Origin: Corallochytrium limacisporum Hawaii
Lineage: Eukaryota > Protista > Pluriformea
DNA length: 64,000 nt
Direction of reading: 5' to 3'
Assembly: GCA_002811645.1 (NCBI GenBank)
Contig: PDIP01000098.1
Span: 108,917 to 172,916 of the forward strand
Positions 7,528 through 54,473 of the stretch are shown here, one piece after another. Below the pieces are notes generated by a model that was not told the origin of the DNA, did no database searches, and saw only the letters and a list, made by a program, of their open reading frames with translations. Numbering within the stretch: position 1 is the stretch's first letter; every line of letters begins with the position of its first letter. The position numbers and the translations under genes are program-made.

Positions 7528-8908
7528 GTTCGTGGGTCTTCCACAACCGTCGCATGTGAGAACAGAGTCCTCAGAATAATCTACAGAACCCGGAAAGGGT
7601 ACGAATGCAGCGAGATCTTTATTGGCAAACGTACGCTCATATCAGGACCATCTTACTTGTTTGAACCGTACACTGCAGCCCACTCGGCCTCAACTACCCG
7701 GAACCTTTCTGACCAGCCCGGCGGCGAGACCCACCGCACGGGGTCAGTCCCGAGGGCGCACTCTCTCTCGCTCTCTCCCGCTTTGGGGGGGGGGCATTTG
7801 CCAATTTGTATAATGATGTTTAATTAGGTTATCGGTTTTATTCCTGCCCCCCTGTTTTCCCCGGCGGGGAGCCACCTTTGACCAAAAAAGACCTGCGCAG
7901 TGCGAGGTGTGTGCTGGGTTTTTGGGTGGGGGTACTTGGGTATACCGCGCGCAAGTGTGTGAGTTTGTGCGGCGCTGGGTGTGCGTGTGCGTGTGTGTGT
8001 GTGTTTGTGGAGAGATTTTCTATGCGGTACCGGGAGCCCCAGGCTTTGTGTGAGAGTTTTTTTGCTTTCCATTCTTTGTGTCTTTGGTATTCTTTTTTGG
8101 GGAAGGGGGGGGGAGGGGCGCGCAGGGGAGTTCTTCGGTTTTTCTTTTATTTCTCCAGCCGGGACTGGAAACGGACACAGCGCCGGCCAAAAACTCGGTA
8201 CAAAAACTAAGGAAATCACGAAAGGCTTGCCACCGACCCACCCCCGCGAAGGCCGGGGGGGGGACCGTTTCGTTTTTCGTCTTTTTTTTTGTGTTGGTTC
8301 GGGAAAAAAATGGGCGACAGTTTTTTTTTCCCTGTTTCTTTCTTTTTTTTTTCCTTATTTTGGCCCTGCGCGCTGTTGTCCCCTTACGCACCACCGTCAG
8401 CACCGGCCCTGTCTCCAGAGGCCGTTTCCGAGGGCGGGTGGTCAGCAACGGGGACCCACAGGCAACACCGGGCAAAAGGGTGGTGAATAGAGCGGAGGTA
8501 GGGGGGTCTGTGTGTGTGTGTTTGGCTCTCGTCACCCCAGGAACCGAAAAGGGAAAAAAAAGAAAAAAATTGCAGAAAAAAAATAAAACCGTGGAGGGGT
8601 TGGCACGCATTGATGAGAGTGGGAGCATGGGAGACCGGTATGTTTTATACTGAAATTGCTGTGCAGTGGCAGGGATCAAGAGACACGGACCCCAAGGATC
8701 CGATCGGTTTGTCTGACTCGGGCGGGGAGAGGCTACGGCACCAGGATATGTACCGAGGCATGGAGCACGGTTGGGAGTGTGATCGAGCGTACGAATGCGT
8801 TCCGATGGTCTGTTGTTTCTTTATCTCCTTTCTTCCCTACGCACACTAGCGCAAAGAGTTTTGGGTTGCGTGTGTGTAGTTTAACATGCATGTGACCAGA
8901 CAATGGGG

Positions 8909-8916
8909 TATTTAAA
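8909..8916 (+). promoter_or_regulatory. TATA-like element (TATTTAAA) upstream of GCDH
   Basis: About 105 bp upstream of the ATG and followed by an A-rich leader. Confidence 0.35.
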
Positions 8917-44084: not shown

Positions 44085-46491
44085 TTTCTGTGATGTGGTG
44101 CAGATTCAGTTGATACACTGGAACCAGTTCGGTCGAGACTAAGAGAGATCAGCGATCATCTCTCAGGGAAGGGGCCTCCCGGGGGGTTGCAGTGGGGTTG
44201 TACTTTTGTATTTTTGGCATCACTGCTAATCATTACTGTTCCCTGTGCTCCATACTGACTGACCCGTCCTGATTGGGTTATTTCTTGTGGGGTACACCGT
44301 ACTGACGCGCTTATCTCCCTATCTCTGATTTCCCCTCTTTTCATAGTTTTTAAGTCGGTAGTTAATAAAGGAAAACTATCGGGGTCTTACGTGTGAGCTG
44401 GTGGTGGTGTGGAGAGAAAGAAGACGATGAGGAGGGGAGGGGGGAGTGGGGGGTTTTGTGTTGTGGGGAGGGAGAACCGGTTTAGGATGCTTGACCCTAC
44501 CTTTCTTGTATTGCTCTTTCTTACATCCCGCGGTGGGTGGGGTGAGGGAGCAGGAGGGATGTGTGTGTGTGTGTGTGTGTGTGTGTCACCCCTGAAACGG
44601 TGAAACACTATTTAAGCAACAGAAAAAGTCAGTGAACACGAGGTAACCTTCGTACAACACACGAACAGACCAAAGTTGTTACCTACCATATGAGAACAAC
44701 AAGCAAGCAAGGTAGCAATGAATAGGTAAGATTTCGCGTCGCCTAAAGTTCCTTTGGTTCCATTTGTTGCGGTCCCGCCAGGACGACCAGTGTGAGCAGC
44801 ACAGAAAAAAAAAGAAGGAGATGAATATACTAGTAATGTATAGAATAGAAAAGGACACACGGACAGGGTGTGCGTAAGAGGAGAAGAGAGAGGGCAGGGA
44901 AGAAAAAATTTCTCCCGTAGTGTCCTCCTCCTCCTGGTGTGCAAAGACTATGTTCCTGACTTACAAGACTAAGAAAAAATTTCCCCGTGACAGGAACCGC
45001 TGCAGATATTGAGTACATTTATTATAGATTCTGTCATTCTAGTCGGGAGGGCTTAATGAGGAGGAGGACGAGGCATTCCAACACTGTCTCACCGTCCAAA
45101 CGGCCGTATGACATTTCAGGATGACTAGGAAAGAATAGCGAAGGAAAGTGTATCACAATTCTCTTAACAAATGTTGTCACCATTTCACTACTGAAAATCA
45201 TAATGTGCTCACATCGAGAACAGTAGAAAAGGGACTCGGAAATTCTAAAGCGACAACAAACACCGGGCGGGTGAGCGGGAGGAGAGGAAGAGGGCGAGAG
45301 AGAAAGAGAGAGAGAGAGAGAGGACAAACGCTGCCGCAAGGGGCCCAGGGGGAAATTGACACAGAAAAGCCCTGCACAAGCAACAGGCCACGTTCTCTGA
45401 ATCAACAGGGTGTGTTTGTTTTTATGTCATTACGTCCTTGATGCGCTCCACGGTAGGTTTTGCTTGTCAGACCAGGTGGAGAGGTTTGTGGTATATGGGA
45501 GTGTTGGGACCGGATCCCTTTGTGTACCGAACGAACCCACCCCTTCCCCCGGCAGGGGATGTTTCATTCGTAGTTTGCTGCTTTGCTTCGCGGTGCGGCG
45601 TGTCGCATGCTTTCTATTTACATTGTGTTTGCGTTCCCTTTTTTTTTGCTTCCATCTTCCACTTCACTTTAATTGCCTTTGATGGCGACGAGCAGTGGTG
45701 GTGCAGAGGAGGGGAGGGGGGGGGAGGAGCTTGCGAGGTGTAAACATGGACTGGCGTTTGCACCTCGTACTTGCAACTCTCCTATCGCATACGAGGTTTC
45801 AAGCCCGTGTTGAACCAGTGCAACATCGGACGCGTACTCGGAACGAGGGTTTGCTGTGTTTTCATTCTGCCGCAGAGCGGAAAAGGAGAGGGGAGGGGGG
45901 GGGNNNNNNNNNNNNNNNNNNNNNNNNNNNNNNNNNNNNNNNNNNNNNNNNNNNNNNNNNNNNNNNNNNNNNNNNNNNNNNNNNNNNNNNNNNNNNNNNN
46001 NNNNNNNNNNNNNNNNNNNNNNNNNNNNNNNNNNNNNNNNNNNNNNNNNNNNNNNNNNNNNNNNNNNNNNNNNNNNNNNNNNNNNNNNNNNNNNNNNNNN
46101 NNNNNNNNNNNNNNNNNNNNNNNNNNNNNNNNNNNNNNNNNNNNNNNNNNNNNNNNNNNNNNNNNNNNNNNNNNNNNNNNNNNNNNNNNNNNNNNNNNNN
46201 NNNNNNNNNNNNNNNNNNNNNNNNNNNNNNNNNNNNNNNNNNNNNAGGGAAGGAGGGGGGGGGGGGAGGGAGGGGGAGGAGGGATGGGGGAGGGGCCAGT
46301 AGGCAAAAAAAAAAAGAAAGGAAATAGTAAAGGGAGCGGGAAAGAGGAAACGGGAGAGAGAGAGAGAGACAGGCCTAACCGACAGAGGGGAAGTTGCGGG
46401 TGTCCGTACTGTCTCTCGGCCCTCCTACTCCTTTGCCTTTCTGCTTTGTACTTTCCTCTTCTGACTTTTCCCTTCAACGTGCAGGGTTGGG

Positions 46492-46499
46492 TATAAAAG
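46492..46499 (+). promoter_or_regulatory. Canonical TATA box TATAAAAG of the microprotein gene
   Basis: Consensus TATAWAWR, preceded by a pyrimidine tract and followed about 30 bp later by an A-rich, ATG-free leader running to ATG 46630. Confidence 0.7.
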
Positions 46500-46629
46500 G
46501 GCAAAATCTGTACACGTTACCACACTCATAGACGAAGAAGGAACTTCTTAATCCTTTAAGAACAAGTACCGCGACAAGTAAAGAGACACACAAGAGAGAC
46601 ACATACGAGAGACAAGAGAAAAGGAAACC

Positions 46630-46827
46630 ATGAACAATCAGAACCAGCCTCGTGAGACCGTCCTGGGTACCCTCAGGCGCACGATCAGCGATGCCTTTAC
46701 TGCTCCTCGCCCCATTGACATTGAGCCCCGCAAGCGCACCCTGAGCACTGATTCTTCCATTGTCGGCAGCTTCGAGGGCCCCTCCGGTTTCGATCGCTTT
46801 GCCTATAGCGACTTCGGTGCTGACTAA
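46630..46827 (+). CDS. 65-aa microprotein of unknown function
   Basis: aaaccATG context, upstream TATA box, none of 65 sense codons ends in A, TAA stop, AU-rich downstream region. Confidence 0.8.
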   Translation: MNNQNQPRETVLGTLRRTISDAFTAPRPIDIEPRKRTLSTDSSIVGSFEGPSGFDRFAYSDFGAD

Positions 46828-48614
46828 TCGGCCCGACAGCTCCCATATCAAAAACTACCGTATTCTTCAACTGACAATCTGGGCTCTGTTCGCGTTCGAT
46901 CCCGTGTTGCTGAACTCTCAACCTTAGACACATAACTTGCCGGCCAAAGATGCCGCGCCTTACTATATCATAATCATACCATCATAGTTCCATCATAGCC
47001 TTCAATCCCTATCCAACACTCTAAAGCAACGAAAATCCCCCAAAAATATAAGATTTTAGCTGTTTTAAGTTTGGCATCATAATCAACATCACGTTCACCA
47101 TTGTTTCTTGGCTTTTTACACTATCTTTATGTTTATGCTGTTCGCCTGATGATGATGATCATGCCCTCAAAATCATCGCTCTTACTAGTCTCGCCGTCCG
47201 GAGGGGGCCCTTCTACGCCGCCACCAAAATGTGTGTTTACAGTACATTCACTATAGCCACCCTTGCGCATTGGCCGCAGCGGGAGGCAAAGAGGCCAAGA
47301 GCGGGAGTCTATTTTTTTCCAAGTCCGGTTCCGCGTATGCGTTTTTGGTCCGACACTATCGAAAAGCTACACCCCAGTGGTCTTCTGATATGAACGCGGA
47401 GGATTTTTTTACTGGACGATAGGCAGCCCCCGCAGACTCCACGTCCACGCAAGTCACCACCAGGCCACTGCCTGCGAAGGAACTCTTGGAGGGACCCAGG
47501 AAGGGTTGTTTCCGTAAGACCCCTTTCTGCTGCCGCCGAACGCCTTGGAACTACGTACTTAGCTTAACTATCTATCTAAATGGTCCAACTCCTCCTAAAG
47601 GAACCAGTTATCGTTCATCTGTCATACGCTCCTCGCCGTCTCTTGACCTCGCCTCTCCCGCCGCTTTTCCCAGGGCTGGTAAGTGGGCGAGCCCATGATT
47701 GCATTCTGTTTCGCGAATCTAATGTTTTATATATATATATATACACCGCACTACTATACTACAGTATTTGCTGTTTTGATTACGTTCATTATTTAGCTGA
47801 ATTTAACATATTTTGGTGCCTCCCTGATTTATGATTGCCGAATACAATAATCAATTCAGCGGTTGGTAATCCTGCGCGAAATCCACCCCCCAAGCACCAT
47901 GGAAAACAAAATAAATCGGCCCCCTTCTCCATTTTGGCCCATCGCTGCGGTCGCTGTATGCTTTNNNNNNNNNNNNNNNNNNNNNNNNNNNNNNNNNNNN
48001 NNNNNNNNNNNNNNNNNNNNNNNNNNNNNNNNNNNNNNNNNNNNNNNNNNNNNNNNNNNNNNNNNNNNNNNNNNNNNNNNNNNNNNNNNNNNNNNNNNNN
48101 NNNNNNNNNNNNNNNNNNNNNNNNNNNNNNNNNNNNNNNNNNNNNNNNNNNNNNNNNNNNNNNNNNNNNNNNNNNNNNNNNNNNNNNNNNNNNNNNNNNN
48201 NNNNNNNNNNNNNNNNNNNNNNNNNNNNNNNNNNNNNNNNNNNNNNNNNNNNNNNNNNNNNNNNNNNNNNNNNNNNNNNNNNNNNNNNNNNNNCAGTGCC
48301 TTCAGATGGAAAATACCAAAACACTGGTGCGTCTGCCACCAAGAAAAAGGAAAGGCAGAGCAAAAACAAAGAAAAGTCTCACCGAGTGGCTATTTGGATG
48401 ACCGCGCCGTGTCAACTTAACCTTTGGGCGTGAAATTTCACACTGTAACAAACACAAATGCATTCAGTGGTGCCTTTGGAAGATGGCAAAAACTGTGTTT
48501 GATCCACTAAATTGAGTTCAAATGATGCGACAAAAAGAACAGAATTGAGAACTAGACGATGTAAAGGGCTGATGTAAAGGGCTGTTACAAAGACATAGAT
48601 CACCAGGTATCAAC

Positions 48615-51600
48615 ATGGCCCCAAGTAGCGGCATGGATCCACAGACCTATGTGTACAAGTTGAAAAAGCTTTCACTGTCGAAAGTAGGAAAGTTGGAGAT
48701 CACATTCCGTGAAGACGTACACTTAATAGGGACTGACAATTATGAACAGGTAGAGACATCCCTGGCAGCAGTGGAAGATGTTATCTTCCGCACAATGGAT
48801 CCAAGTTTATTCGTATTCATGGGAGCGAAGACAATATGTGAAAGCTTACGAAATGCTGGAGTGCCGTGTTATTGGTACCGGATCGGCACAGCGAACAATG
48901 CGGACCCAAATGTGCTGCCAAAGGTATCGGTTTGCGCCTATGACCTCGTCGGAAACGGGTTCGAGGAGGTCGGAGAAATGTCTGATGAACTGCCTACGGC
49001 AGACGTTATGGTAGAGCGCTTACAGAACCTTACAGATTCATCACTGGCAGAGGCATGGAAATCAGTTCTCATCAGTGAGTACACAGCGGGCGTACTCTCC
49101 ACCGCAACTGTAGGCAGAAAGGACCCAATGGCCCATAAGAACGAATGGGATCACTTCACAACAGCTCTCCGGGACAGTGTGTACCATAGTCTCCACACAC
49201 ACGGATTTACAAGGCTGGGAGATGCGCTCATTTATACGGAAGGACATGGTGACGGGGCCAAGCGACAGAAAACAACAAGTGGTGCATCCAAGACTAGCAC
49301 CGGCACGGGGCCCCTGCTGCAGTTGATTGTGAATGACATGAAAGGACCGCTGCAGGATGAATTAGATAACATCGAGATCGACACCGTGGTCAACTATCCT
49401 GGCCTGTCGTTTGATTGGTATCGGAATGGAGAGAATGGACTTGTTTGTAGGGTAGAGTTGCACCGCAACTATGTGTCTCCGCTGAGCAGCTTGGATGAGT
49501 CTGACACAGCGGAATTGCTGGAGCAACCAAGCCTTCGCCGCGTACTGCTAGCTCCGTATGGGACTGTGGGCACGTTGGTGATTCCGTCTGCGAATCTTTC
49601 TGCGCACCTTGCCAAGGGAAACGAGTACCTTAGTTTTGTACACTGGAACGGCATTGTTGACGGGACCAGTGAGTTTGCGGAGATGTGCTGGGTTGGCCTG
49701 GATGGACAAATTATTGCCTATCCGAAAAATTTGGTGTTTGCTATTGGTCAAGTACCCGCGGGCAAGAATGATAGTATGAAGCAAATGCGCCGGCGCTGGC
49801 GCAAATTGGCCGCTCAACGGCAGGCTGCCTTCAAAGCGTTCAACAAGGATGTCAAGGAAGAGTCAATAGACTCCATCGTCATGCCGGGTGATCAGACCAA
49901 GGTGGGCGAACTGCAAAAGGAATTGACTGAGGAGCTTTCAGCGTTGTTGAAGGTCGAGGTTCCGATCGCTGAAACTCCCATTAACGACCCAGGATCTGCC
50001 GATGTTCAACAATCGATGCAAGCCTCGACACCGGCTTTCAGTATGGTAAAGACACCGGGATCAGCCGTTTTCAACATGTTGCAGCGAACACACACGGGGG
50101 GAATCACAAAGTACAGCCCTGATGCTGGCATTTCGCGTCCCAACGCACGCAGCAACGAATTCCAGGGAGCGCTTCCATCGAGTCGTTTCTCTACGGGTGA
50201 CTACTTGACCTGCGGAGACTTTGGTTTGTTCCAATCAAGCGATAGCTATGCCCGGGAAGACATTGTGCACGGGCGCCCTCCTACAACAGAGCAAGGCCAA
50301 CCCGCCAGCGTCGAGGGAGAAGTTATCAACATCTTGAGTCCACTGAACATGACGAACACAACACAGATGTCACAGACATCTCAGGGAGATGCTGGGCACG
50401 AATTCAATCCTTGGTCGGTGAATCCCTTGGTGAGCAGCGCGAGTCCGTCACCTGTCAACGACTGGAACGTCCCGCAATATGCACCAGGCCGATCAGAGTA
50501 TACGAGGGAGTCCACCAGACTGCAAGATCTGCTCCTTACGAACCGGCAACAAAATGCACAAGAGATTCCTCTGTCCGCCGGTGGACCGGGCAAGATAGAT
50601 TACAATCTGAACTCCTCAAGCGAGCACAATGTGTCCGAGAAGCCAATGACCGCAACAGCCAAGGCCCAACTCAAACTTCGCCGGGTCCTTGCGCTCATCA
50701 ATGTGCTGGGAATGACTCTGTTAAGTGCCTACATCGCGGGTCTTAGGGTCGCTCTCAGTGACGAACCGGTGAAACAGCTCCTTAAGGGCTTCGTTAAGCA
50801 TAAGCCGGCACTGCCTGTCATTGCCAGCAACGAAGAAAGCGAAAAGAAAGAAAGTGAGGAGGCTGAGAAAATTGCACAACCGACGACACCTGCCGCGAAG
50901 GCCGGAATGCAGAGAATTCCCGGGATCCTGACGCGGTGGCAACTGCGCAGTGGGCCGTCCCTGGAAGCAATCGGTTCATTGTGGTGCTTCCATACGGTAG
51001 CGGCCCAACACAATGCTGATATCAGTGGAGTGGGTCAGAGCGTGGAAGAAACAGTTCGCGACGGAATGCAGCGGCAGTACCACTTCTGCAGTGCGCTAAA
51101 ATCCAGCTCACTGGAGAGGCCGTTGCGACTGTGGCAGCATTTCCACCGGAACCTCGACCTGGTGGACCAAGTGAAGGGATCCACTGCAGATCCTGTGCCC
51201 ACTGCACCGAGAGCTGTCCGTACCATGCCGCGCCATCCACGGTCACTTCGGAGGCTGTTTGTGGGCCAATGGCGGCAGGAGGCTAAGATTCCCTCGGCTG
51301 CATGGCCATATCTAGACAATGAGATCGTGCGCATACTAGGAAGCCTGTCCAAGAAGGCGCTAGAGCCTGAGAAGGCAGCGATGCGTCTCCTGGCGTCATC
51401 AAAATGCCAGAGCAATCCCCCAAACGGGACTGACAACAAAATGGATGTCGACGATGTGAAAGAAGAAGCCCCAGCGGCGAATGGTAAAGACAGTGAGGAT
51501 ATGGAACCCAGCTACTCGGAGCCCCTGCGCATTCCACATCTGCTCATGAAGCACGAGGGCGATCGGGTGGCGACCTTGCCAAACGCCCTGAGCCAATGGC

Positions 51601-54473
51601 AATACCTGGGGCTGCAGCCTTACAGCGGTGGCAAAAATATTTCGTATCTGATTGTGGCTCCGGAGAGCGTGCGGGACACGTCCATGTTGACGGCTCTGGT
51701 CAGTCAAATTGCCAGCGCCTACAATGCACTCAACCTCGGTGATCAGGAGCCGCTTCTCACGCAAAAGGCCTATGACAGAGCATTTGCGACTCCTGTAGGC
51801 GGTGGTGCATCTGGAACTCTGTCTTCGCGGGGAGCCGGTGCTGCGGGCAGCGACAATTATACCATTATTACTCCTGGTGGTGCATCCAGTACCCCTGGAG
51901 GTGTAGCACAGCTACGTCGTGGTGCACAAAGTCCGGCGGTTGCCGCCTTGCGTAATGAGGCCTCCGGCAATGTCATCACCAACGCTCTCATGCCAAACAT
52001 CACCGGTGTAAATATGCACCAGTTCCGCATTCTTGCACACGACATGGATGCCCGTAACAAACCAACCACTAAGACTGCCGCGTTGCGCATGATCAAGAAC
52101 CCAAAACACAAAGACGATCACCCAGCCACGGGAAGCAGTGGCGGCACTGCGGGCGCCTCCGGTGAGCGCCGTACGGGTGCGTCTCCGGCCACAACCACAC
52201 CTGCCGCTTCTGCTCTGCATGGACAGTACCACCCTGCCATTATTTCACACCTCGACGCCATCCTCGCCACAATCTTCCGCGATGAAAAGGTTGCAGCAAC
52301 GCTGGTGGATCGTCCCGCAGGCACTCCCGGCACTCCCGGCACACCGGCAGCGTTGTTGACTCCCGCGATAGCCACCCCGGGCACTCCTTCGAGCGTGCCC
52401 ATGGCTGAGGCGAAGACTGAAACCGGGCTCAGCAGCCACGCACTAGCGGATACATCGGAGTCCGGTGTAGAGCACCTGGTGCTCTACTTCTTTGTGCGTG
52501 GCCTGCACAGAGATGAGGAAGGCACCGATAGCAGCGGCAGGGGCATTGCCATGAGCGGCCCTCAAGCACAGCAGTCTACGAGTGGCAAGGAAGGCAGCAG
52601 TGCAGCCTCGCCACAGCAACGGGCGGCCTTCGAAGGAACGTTCCAAATGGCGCGTGCGGCCATTGCAGCAAGCCTGGCCGAGATTCCGTACCTTGCTCGC
52701 GCTCGCATTATGGTCCAATTCATTGACATTGCCCTTTGCGAAAACCCTGGACTGGAAGGTTTTGATTCGTTTGCGGATCTGGGCCGACACTACGCAATGA
52801 ATGTATACAGTCGGTGCCGTGTGATTGTCGCGCCGGAGATCCCGAAGGACGTTCATTTGTCGCTGGTACCGCCTCCGATCGGCAGCCAGCACCACATCTA
52901 TCAGCCCCCGTACCGTCTACTCGGAGATCTCGACCGCCTCCAGACCAAGCCGCTTGACGGCAACATGCCGCATGACACTATCAACCTTGGTAGTGTGAAG
53001 TGGAGCATTGAGCTGAACCGATATGTGAGCTCCACAGAACTCTGTCGCACGCTGTACGCGACCATTCTCCTTCCTAGCCGAACTGCGACGCGCTTGTACT
53101 GCTCTTGGACCGATGCCACTGGCCAGATCTTTGAGACATTGAGTTTGACAGTCAATCAGCACCTCGGCAACCAGACCATGGCCATCCGCAGCGGTCTAGC
53201 CGCATTTTGGTGCAGTACCCTGTCGCTGATAAGTGGTGGTGTCGACAATTGGCACGTTGTCGTGCTCTGCACAGGTGCGCTGGACCACTCAGAGATCATG
53301 AGCCTCTGTACTGTGGCAAATGCGTGCCTGAAGAAGGGCATCAACACGGACATCTGCCAGGGCTGCGACGCCTGCGAACTTAAGGAGATTGGCAAGAAGC
53401 CAGGCATAATTGATGTCACCGTGTGTACCTTCAGAGCGCTAACGGGCTCGACGCTGAGCACAGAGAGCATGCAGCAGGCCGTGTTACGGAAACACTCCAG
53501 CACAGGTGACGGTGGTGCCGGCACGGGAGGTGCTCCGGGCAGCGGTGTCAAAGGTCAGGGCACACGTGACTCGACGAACCTTAATAGCGCAGAGAAACTC
53601 GGCGTCGGTGGGCGGGACACATCGTCGTCTTCACTGAAAGCCCCGCCAAGCGGGGTGGCGGCAGTTTCAGGGGCCACCGGCGCCGCAGGTACAGAGGAGA
53701 ACCCCGAGGATGTCGTCGATGGTGGTTACCTCCGCACGTGCCTGCGTATTCCACGATCACGGATTTTGCTCTTCCCACAAGGTCTGTATGACTCGGACCA
53801 GGTGTCGTTCACTTCGGCTGGCCCAGGGGAGAAAAGTACCAGTGGCACTGCTCCCGCAGCTCCGGCGACAACTGCTGCCGACGGCACTGCTGGAGTCGGC
53901 ACCGAAGTGAAACAAGAGGGAAATGCCGACGGAGGAGCTGCATCTATTGTCGCGAACCCGAAGGTGCCGATCGAGCCCAAGTTCCTGTGTTCTGCTGTGC
54001 TGACCTGTACGGACCAAACGATCAGCGCCTCCCTGAGCGGCGGAGACAGCGGCGGCCAAACCACTGGCACAGGTGACGGCAAGGAACCAAATAGTGCTTC
54101 CGCCACCGAACAGGCGCCTGCGGACATGGGGAGCAGCGATGCCCCGACGTTGGCACAGTCCACGCAAGCTCGCGGCACCGGCGTCAACGAAGTGCTCTCC
54201 AAGACCCGCTCTCCGACGACCACTGCCTGCGTTGATCTCAAGGTAGATCTCATTGACCGTTTCACAAGCCACGAAGGTGTGAACGGTATCGAAGTTCACA
54301 ACGAAGTTTGCTGTGCTTTCAGTGGTTCTGCGACCGCGCTGATGCAGCACATTGCGAGCCAGCTGGATGCCCTGAGTTGGTTGCAATGCGACATGTCAAC
54401 TGGTGTGCGCACGACCAATCTTCCGTACCACATGATCTGGATGATGCTGCTCTTGGGTGAACGGATGGACTGA
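48615..54473 (+). CDS. MED13: Mediator kinase-module subunit MED13
   Basis: RVLLAPYGTVGTL; EPLRIPHLL...LPNALSQWQYLGLQPYSGGKNISYLIVAPE; LYCSWTDATGQIFET; C-terminal LDALSWLQCD..TGVRTTNLPYH. Confidence 0.88.
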   Translation: MAPSSGMDPQTYVYKLKKLSLSKVGKLEITFREDVHLIGTDNYEQVETSLAAVEDVIFRTMDPSLFVFMGAKTICESLRNAGVPCYWYRIGTANNADPNVLPKVSVCAYDLVGNGFEEVGEMSDELPTADVMVERLQNLTDSSLAEAWKSVLISEYTAGVLSTATVGRKDPMAHKNEWDHFTTALRDSVYHSLHTHGFTRLGDALIYTEGHGDGAKRQKTTSGASKTSTGTGPLLQLIVNDMKGPLQDELDNIEIDTVVNYPGLSFDWYRNGENGLVCRVELHRNYVSPLSSLDESDTAELLEQPSLRRVLLAPYGTVGTLVIPSANLSAHLAKGNEYLSFVHWNGIVDGTSEFAEMCWVGLDGQIIAYPKNLVFAIGQVPAGKNDSMKQMRRRWRKLAAQRQAAFKAFNKDVKEESIDSIVMPGDQTKVGELQKELTEELSALLKVEVPIAETPINDPGSADVQQSMQASTPAFSMVKTPGSAVFNMLQRTHTGGITKYSPDAGISRPNARSNEFQGALPSSRFSTGDYLTCGDFGLFQSSDSYAREDIVHGRPPTTEQGQPASVEGEVINILSPLNMTNTTQMSQTSQGDAGHEFNPWSVNPLVSSASPSPVNDWNVPQYAPGRSEYTRESTRLQDLLLTNRQQNAQEIPLSAGGPGKIDYNLNSSSEHNVSEKPMTATAKAQLKLRRVLALINVLGMTLLSAYIAGLRVALSDEPVKQLLKGFVKHKPALPVIASNEESEKKESEEAEKIAQPTTPAAKAGMQRIPGILTRWQLRSGPSLEAIGSLWCFHTVAAQHNADISGVGQSVEETVRDGMQRQYHFCSALKSSSLERPLRLWQHFHRNLDLVDQVKGSTADPVPTAPRAVRTMPRHPRSLRRLFVGQWRQEAKIPSAAWPYLDNEIVRILGSLSKKALEPEKAAMRLLASSKCQSNPPNGTDNKMDVDDVKEEAPAANGKDSEDMEPSYSEPLRIPHLLMKHEGDRVATLPNALSQWQYLGLQPYSGGKNISYLIVAPESVRDTSMLTALVSQIASAYNALNLGDQEPLLTQKAYDRAFATPVGGGASGTLSSRGAGAAGSDNYTIITPGGASSTPGGVAQLRRGAQSPAVAALRNEASGNVITNALMPNITGVNMHQFRILAHDMDARNKPTTKTAALRMIKNPKHKDDHPATGSSGGTAGASGERRTGASPATTTPAASALHGQYHPAIISHLDAILATIFRDEKVAATLVDRPAGTPGTPGTPAALLTPAIATPGTPSSVPMAEAKTETGLSSHALADTSESGVEHLVLYFFVRGLHRDEEGTDSSGRGIAMSGPQAQQSTSGKEGSSAASPQQRAAFEGTFQMARAAIAASLAEIPYLARARIMVQFIDIALCENPGLEGFDSFADLGRHYAMNVYSRCRVIVAPEIPKDVHLSLVPPPIGSQHHIYQPPYRLLGDLDRLQTKPLDGNMPHDTINLGSVKWSIELNRYVSSTELCRTLYATILLPSRTATRLYCSWTDATGQIFETLSLTVNQHLGNQTMAIRSGLAAFWCSTLSLISGGVDNWHVVVLCTGALDHSEIMSLCTVANACLKKGINTDICQGCDACELKEIGKKPGIIDVTVCTFRALTGSTLSTESMQQAVLRKHSSTGDGGAGTGGAPGSGVKGQGTRDSTNLNSAEKLGVGGRDTSSSSLKAPPSGVAAVSGATGAAGTEENPEDVVDGGYLRTCLRIPRSRILLFPQGLYDSDQVSFTSAGPGEKSTSGTAPAAPATTAADGTAGVGTEVKQEGNADGGAASIVANPKVPIEPKFLCSAVLTCTDQTISASLSGGDSGGQTTGTGDGKEPNSASATEQAPADMGSSDAPTLAQSTQARGTGVNEVLSKTRSPTTTACVDLKVDLIDRFTSHEGVNGIEVHNEVCCAFSGSATALMQHIASQLDALSWLQCDMSTGVRTTNLPYHMIWMMLLLGERMD

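Follow-up and report, generated by a model that had tools for sequence, protein, structure and literature searches.

The stretch of Corallochytrium limacisporum DNA analysed here (the window, 64,000 nt of contig PDIP01000098.1) contains, at 46630-46827 of the plus strand, a small ORF of 65 sense codons closed by a TAA. The 65-aa peptide quoted in an earlier note on the same DNA is the exact translation of this frame. The ATG-free leader described in that note was also found: not a single ATG is present in the 260 nt preceding the start codon (260 nt being all that was examined), and the ORF opens with the first ATG to follow these 260 or more ATG-free bases, which include the entire leader. 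The start codon lies in the context aaaccATGa, with an A at position -3. The part of the 5' leader covered by a 441-nt transcript contig from sample X1 (see below) extends from 46546 to 46629 on the plus strand; it is A/G-rich and ATG-free, and an in-frame TAA (46579-46581), also inside the transcript contig, is found 17 codons 5' of the ATG. The 3' untranslated region, taken up to the limits of the X1 contigs ending at 46986 and 46997, occupies positions 46828-46997 of the same strand.

Upstream of the leader, the TATAAAAG sequence is at 46492-46499, where the earlier note had placed it. It is contained in a TATA-type core promoter box, GGGTATAAAAG (46489-46499, plus strand), located 138 nt before the ATG. 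In its degenerate form, GGGTATWWRAR, the box occurs twice in the 64-kb window for an expectation of 0.22, and each copy sits 115-140 nt 5' of an ATG in the corresponding orientation. The second copy (8906-8916) lies 116 nt before an acyl-CoA dehydrogenase ORF; of the window's ordinary genes, this one has the smallest proportion of codons ending in A (hereafter A3). Similar boxes are present 95-110 nt upstream of the EF1A (GGTATTTGAGA), H3 (GGGTATTTGAAAG), H2B (GGGTATTTAAAT) and GAPDH (GGGTATTTAGAG) genes, and the form shorter by one G, GGTATWWRAR, was found in the EF1A, H3 and H2B loci. As judged from these sequences, the GGGTATWWRAR-type box may serve as a core-promoter element for genes that are strongly expressed in this organism. 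Directly 5' of the box lies a pyrimidine-rich (CT) tract (46400-46485, plus strand), with an apparent resemblance to the CT-rich tracts of strong fungal promoters. Further 5', a purine-rich (G/A) low-complexity tract (46246-46380, plus strand), with tandem repeats in its first part (46246-46295), adjoins an assembly gap; this tract may have a role in the promoter.

Four sequencing runs were aligned to positions 46246-47950, i.e. the full stretch between two assembly gaps. X1 and X2 are two samples of the same cultured organism (the X1 run dates from 2015), and X3 and X4 are marine metatranscriptomes from 2025. X1 gave a 441-nt contig on 46546-46986, colinear with the genome, without any joint and with silent flanks; its depth was 208, a value which is not a measure of expression, the kind of library (RNA) being a guess on record. 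A DNA library would also cover the flanks, so the X1 pattern fits RNA. The contig begins about 47 nt past the TATA-type box and ends about 160-170 nt past the TAA. Its start at 46546 is close to the transcription start site that had been expected near 46520-46530, with the proviso that this is the end of a contig and not that of a transcript: contigs reveal neither the strand nor the true transcript ends. The X3 and X4 contigs together cover 46750-47026 (46750-46959 and 46809-47026), with an identity of 95-99%. X1 differs from the genome once, by a T>C change at 46794 which turns the GAT codon of Asp55 into its synonym GAC; X3 and X4 differ at the same synonymous site and at two positions of the 3' untranslated region. 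Among these three samples, the Asp55 change is the sole one inside the ORF. X2 gave no contig over the ORF, and a hole in contigs proves nothing.

Downstream of the small gene, at 1.8 kb and on the same strand, is an intronless ORF of 1952 residues (48615-54473), with weak matches to the N- and C-terminal domains of MED13 and an ordinary codon score (-1.16; the score is defined below). Between the two, X2 has a 311-nt contig of depth 9 on 47329-47638. No convincing ORF was seen there; this piece could belong to the MED13 leader, to a further small gene or to a non-coding transcript. The genes of the window, among them those for MED13, a PIH1/Kintoun protein, ATE1, a PP2C with an EF-hand and an Agd3-type deacetylase, are for the most part intronless. 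The published assembly of Corallochytrium limacisporum is likewise described as gene-dense and intron-poor, with a size of 24.1 Mb and an annotation aided by RNA-seq from 2015 (PMC5560861).

The position of MED13 on the same strand, together with the assembly gap at 47965-48293 and the unexplained transcript piece at 47329-47638 in between, would suit a different view of the small ORF, namely that it is part of a longer gene, either as an exon or as an upstream ORF in a long MED13 leader. Against this, the X1 contig is colinear and unjoined, takes in the whole frame from its upstream stop to the TAA, and stops about 160-170 nt past the latter, X1 being empty beyond. A contig without joints in which the frame is closed 17 codons 5' of the ATG is what a short, unspliced messenger would give, and it speaks against an exon of a longer gene. 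The small gene also has its own TATA-type box, and its codon score is +0.16 versus -1.16 for MED13. We conclude that membership in a longer gene is very improbable, and that the small ORF is the stand-alone gene claimed before.

On its 5' side, the small gene was said to follow a gene-free region of about 9.6 kb. Between 37031 and 46629 every gap-free ORF is indeed at most 165 aa long, and Rfam and tRNA scans, which covered 37.0-48.7 kb, gave no match at all, but the region is interrupted by five assembly gaps. Its GC content is lower (42-50%), and it contains (GT)n, (GA)n and G-rich tracts and microsatellites. Because of the five gaps and the microsatellites, the gene-free status of this stretch is not established: it may be truly gene-free or merely hard to assemble.

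The most distinctive property of the ORF is its codon usage. As had been noticed, none of its 65 sense codons ends in A: the third positions are 33 C, 21 T and 11 G, and the TAA stop is the only codon of the frame with a terminal A. The base is by no means rare elsewhere in the ORF, since A occurs 20, 16 and 0 times at codon positions 1, 2 and 3 (31% at position 1 and 25% at position 2; chi-square p = 9e-5). The absence of A-ending codons had been given a probability of 1e-8 on the assumption of 25% A at third positions. It remains improbable for average genes, but the figure becomes 3.6e-6 when the average A3 of the genome, 17.5% (as given by 13 ordinary long ORFs of the window), is used instead. 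A different picture emerges when strongly expressed genes from the same genome are taken for comparison. A3 was 1.3% for actin, 1.1% for EF1A, 3.0% for GAPDH, 2.0% for alpha-tubulin, 2.4% for beta-tubulin, 2.2% for H3 and 3.3-5.7% for H2B; measured against highly expressed genes (A3 of 1-3%), a value of zero is what one expects. Since housekeeping genes are at 1-3% and ordinary ones at 17.5%, avoidance of A-ending codons appears as a mark of strong expression in this genome. A3 is thereby a simple proxy of expression, which could be used to rank the unannotated ORFs of this genome. The housekeeping genes themselves (actin, EF1A, GAPDH, the tubulins and H3) all look intronless.

A codon score was calculated as the per-codon log-likelihood ratio between highly expressed and average synonymous usage. 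The small ORF obtained +0.156, the training genes +0.39 to +0.68 and ordinary genes -0.55 to -1.35. Among the 402 ATG-initiated ORFs of 30-150 codons in the window the small ORF ranked first, as it did among the 208 ATG-ORFs of 50-120 codons found in the six frames (mean -1.29, sd 0.41); of these 208 it was also the only one with zero A3. The earlier note had proposed high expression, and the codon usage of the small ORF is that of strongly expressed genes; going by sequence, the 65-codon gene is probably strongly expressed.

One oddity deserves a comment. A frame of 125 codons (46474-46851) is open on the minus strand, opposite the small ORF. It was dropped as a candidate gene, having no ATG and a poor codon score (-1.25). 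It is open because the plus strand has no A at third positions: no antisense codon can then start with T, and no stop codon can occur. This frame is a warning for ORF lists made opposite strongly biased genes.

We also considered a non-coding or spurious transcript, in which a 65-codon ORF would be present by chance. Such a view would agree with the failure of the searches described below to find a homologue and with a language-model recognition score lower than that of most known families. It is at odds with the total absence of A from third positions in spite of its 31% and 25% share at the first two, with the top codon score among the 402 small ORFs and with a start at the first ATG, in a good context, after at least 260 ATG-free bases. 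The RNA, moreover, is no more structured than shuffled versions of itself: the fold of the transcript was not better than that of the shuffles (z = +1.8), for which reason a structured RNA was dropped as a reading, and an Rfam search left the transcript without a family match. A chance ORF is therefore quite improbable, and we consider the small ORF as very probably a translated gene.

That the gene would have been missed by length filters, as previously suggested, is plausible. Proteins of this length (65 residues) are dropped by standard annotation pipelines, and the default minimum of TransDecoder, 100 residues, would discard this gene. TransDecoder was used for the published annotation, together with Augustus, PASA and EVM (PMC5560861). 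The exact protein is absent from a collection of 15 billion proteins, which is in line with an escape from annotation, but this collection may omit the genome altogether.

Relatives were sought at several levels. The earlier note had proposed a search for paralogues; when the organism's own assembly (24,109,830 bases in 286 contigs) was searched in six frames at E values up to 10, the gene itself was the only one to come out. No Pfam family was found at E up to 1, a word-indexed search of 5.8 billion proteins returned no candidate, the ESM Atlas, interrogated by features, gave no usable match, and the 65-aa protein is unrecorded in exact-sequence look-ups. A scan of JGI metagenomes with six peptide patterns produced 597 pattern matches, of which 0 were confirmed. 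A search of the literature for the hexapeptides LRRTIS and RKRTLS brought nothing relevant.

A full HMMER search of 1.84 billion representatives returned 7 hits with E values of 0.001 or less. These were discarded; all seven are long proteins built of tandem repeats, from unrelated families (fn3, Big_9/cadherin-like and a triple HSP20), and we judged them to be artefacts because their scores add up 3-20 weak repeated stretches. The most suggestive was the triple HSP20 (alpha-crystallin) protein P0004, in which 43 residues are matched at 35% identity, three times, for a total of 41 bits obtained from the repeated copies; one stretch by itself comes nowhere near significance for the whole library. 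As regards the small heat-shock alpha-crystallin family (PF00011, a domain of about 90 residues), the protein had no HSP20 match in Pfam and no match to the organism's own small heat-shock proteins. Matches in the PDB to clostridial cell-wall-binding repeats and P450s were similarly dropped, as they amount to 2-8 bits per stretch, summed over repeats; the resemblance to clostridial toxin/cell-wall-binding repeats comes down to a chance likeness of GSFEGPSGFDRFA to GVFKGPNGFEYFA. So far, then, the sequence searches place the 65-residue protein in this lineage only, that of a unicellular holozoan. Such an orphan status is unsurprising, because the protein is short and disordered and the lineage is without a sequenced close relative.

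The protein was described in the earlier note as disordered and devoid of a transmembrane segment. Neither a signal peptide nor a hydrophobic segment is present in the sequence. As to disorder, most of the protein is predicted to lack secondary structure, with low confidence, in a single-sequence AlphaFold2 run (mean pLDDT 68); the exception is an amphipathic helix predicted for residues 11-24, VLGTLRRTISDAFT (46660-46701, plus strand), with a pLDDT of 93 for residues 11-20. The hydrophobic moment of this helix was equalled by only 0.8% of shuffles. The net charge is +3 for the N-terminal 39 residues and -4 for the aromatic C-terminal 26 residues. The protein is thus predicted to be basic in its N-terminal half and both acidic and aromatic in its C-terminal tail, with a helix at 11-24 and a disordered remainder.

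Both kinase-type motifs reported before, LRRTIS (residues 15-20) and RKRTLS (residues 34-39), are present. LRRTIS, with a hydrophobic residue at -5 and a basic one at -3 or -4, conforms to L-x-R-x-x-S (CaMK, AMPK, PKD-type); its S20 (codon at 46687-46689) is inside the predicted helix, so its accessibility is uncertain. RKRTLS (46729-46746, plus strand; S39 codon at 46744-46746) is of the R-x-R-x-x-S type and lies in a predicted disordered region; in the model it corresponds to the AGC-kinase motif R-x-R-x-x-S/T (Akt/S6K/SGK-type) in an accessible region. The two are copies of one pattern, [RK]RT[IL]S, ending at S20 and S39, 19 residues apart. In post hoc tests, 0.16% of composition-preserving shuffles contained both kinase motifs, and a fraction of 1.5e-5 contained [RK]R.[IL]S twice. 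A single 14-3-3 gene is present in the genome, as are the C-terminal tails of at least seven AGC kinases, which means that readers and writers of such sites exist in it. When compared with the 14-3-3 motifs R-S-x-pS-x-P and R-x-x-x-pS-x-P, the S20 and S39 sites have R at -3 and T at -2 and are without the P at +2 of the classic motif; their spacing of 19 residues would permit bidentate binding.

The other short motifs that had been singled out, PIDI and VGSFE, did not match any motif that was checked. Compared by eye, PIDI does not fit the PxIxIT consensus of calcineurin sites, nor do IVGSF and RTISDAF fit the RVxF consensus of PP1 sites, and these readings were rejected.

The two dibasic sites (RR at 16-17 and KR at 35-36) split the protein into three pieces, and could for that reason suggest a precursor that is cleaved into short bioactive peptides. 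This is extremely improbable: a protein with no signal peptide or hydrophobic segment would not reach the secretory proteases that act on such sites, and RR 16-17 is inside the predicted helix.

The explanation that best accounts for these observations, with a probability which we put at about 0.6, is that the locus carries a real, intronless and independently transcribed gene, with a TATA-type promoter, for a cytosolic protein of 65 residues the binding of which would be switched by phosphorylation. The protein would be a binding peptide, abundant and intrinsically disordered, in which S20 in the helix and S39, 19 residues on, would be phosphorylated by basophilic kinases of the AGC or CaMK type, and these modifications would switch binding to a partner. 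Two outcomes may be envisaged: the single 14-3-3 dimer would capture both phosphosites in a bidentate manner, or else whatever the helix binds would be released. Taken by itself, the phosphorylation-regulated switch at S20/S39, as read from the motifs, is a tentative proposal. A link with nutrient or stress signalling, with TOR or with regulation was part of the earlier note; nothing in the results points there.

The codon usage invites another interpretation of the same gene. So strong a bias is more readily understood in a bulk, structural or stress-type protein than in a signalling regulator of the usual kind. The product could then be an abundant bulk disordered protein (stress-protective or hydrophilin-like, chaperone-like, or a ribosome- or cytoskeleton-associated filler) in which the kinase motifs are incidental. 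A codon usage as extreme as that of actin or EF1A, typical of bulk proteins and not of regulators, speaks for it, as do the mostly disordered character of the protein, its restriction to one lineage and its lack of a recognisable regulatory domain. On the other hand, the presence of [RK]RT[IL]S twice in 65 residues is very unlikely for the composition, one of the copies sits in the sole confidently predicted helix, and the richness in glycine and charged residues of hydrophilins is not seen here. All in all, the bulk protein appears possible but unlikely, to about the same degree as the phosphorylation switch taken by itself; we retain the phosphorylation-regulated binding peptide as the most economical reading. 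A bolder proposal is that a lineage-specific peptide of near-housekeeping abundance would, through its two kinase sites of the same type, act as a phospho-dependent sponge or buffer for the single 14-3-3, or for a basophilic kinase or phosphatase. We regard this as improbable. If it were true, it would amount to a new, minimal and stoichiometric layer of phospho-signalling control, arisen de novo outside animals.

To conclude, it appears that the gene catalogue of a species central to comparisons on animal origins can be extended by a well-supported, and probably very abundant, protein. For now it is best viewed as an overlooked lineage-specific small disordered protein, the wider significance of which is modest. 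The combination of near-zero A-ending codons and a GGGTAT-type TATA box provides a simple criterion by which others of the kind could be sought in the same genome. Should the cell make use of the paired kinase motifs, the protein would offer a compact model of phospho-regulated disorder. This model is testable, because Corallochytrium can be transfected (bioRxiv 10.1101/2020.11.12.379420).

Among known systems, three families of small proteins were compared directly, and none of them had a Pfam match. For PKI (PF02827), the RRNAI pseudosubstrate register is absent: RRTIS has its isoleucine two positions after RR, and the aromatic YSDF is at the C-terminus, not before the basic motif. For Endosulfine/ARPP-19 (PF04667), FAYSDFG is misaligned to FDSGDY around the serine. 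For WH2/beta-thymosin (PF02205, PF01290), an LRRT is present but within the predicted helix, three residues after a VL pair and not after a linker as is LKKT/V. The likeness to the heat-stable phosphoproteins of animals and fungi (PKI, inhibitor-1/DARPP-32, ARPP-19/ENSA, ARPP-21) is one of layout. Like the 65-aa protein, they are short (60-170 residues), mostly disordered and encoded by stand-alone genes; in regulators of the PKI/DARPP-32/ENSA type, a single short helix or docking motif is accompanied by one basophilic-kinase site, or two, which switch binding, an arrangement to which that of the 65-aa protein may, by analogy, be compared. It differs from this group in having no sequence relation to it and a codon usage that suggests a far higher abundance. 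With bidentate 14-3-3 clients it would share two R-x-x-S sites placed in a flexible chain, here 19 residues apart and without the proline at +2. Lastly, phospholamban has a cytoplasmic helix with an RRxS-type site. Unlike phospholamban, the 65-aa protein has no membrane segment, and the two have no sequence relation. By analogy only, both would present an amphipathic helix that bears a basophilic-kinase site, so that phosphorylation would alter what the helix binds.
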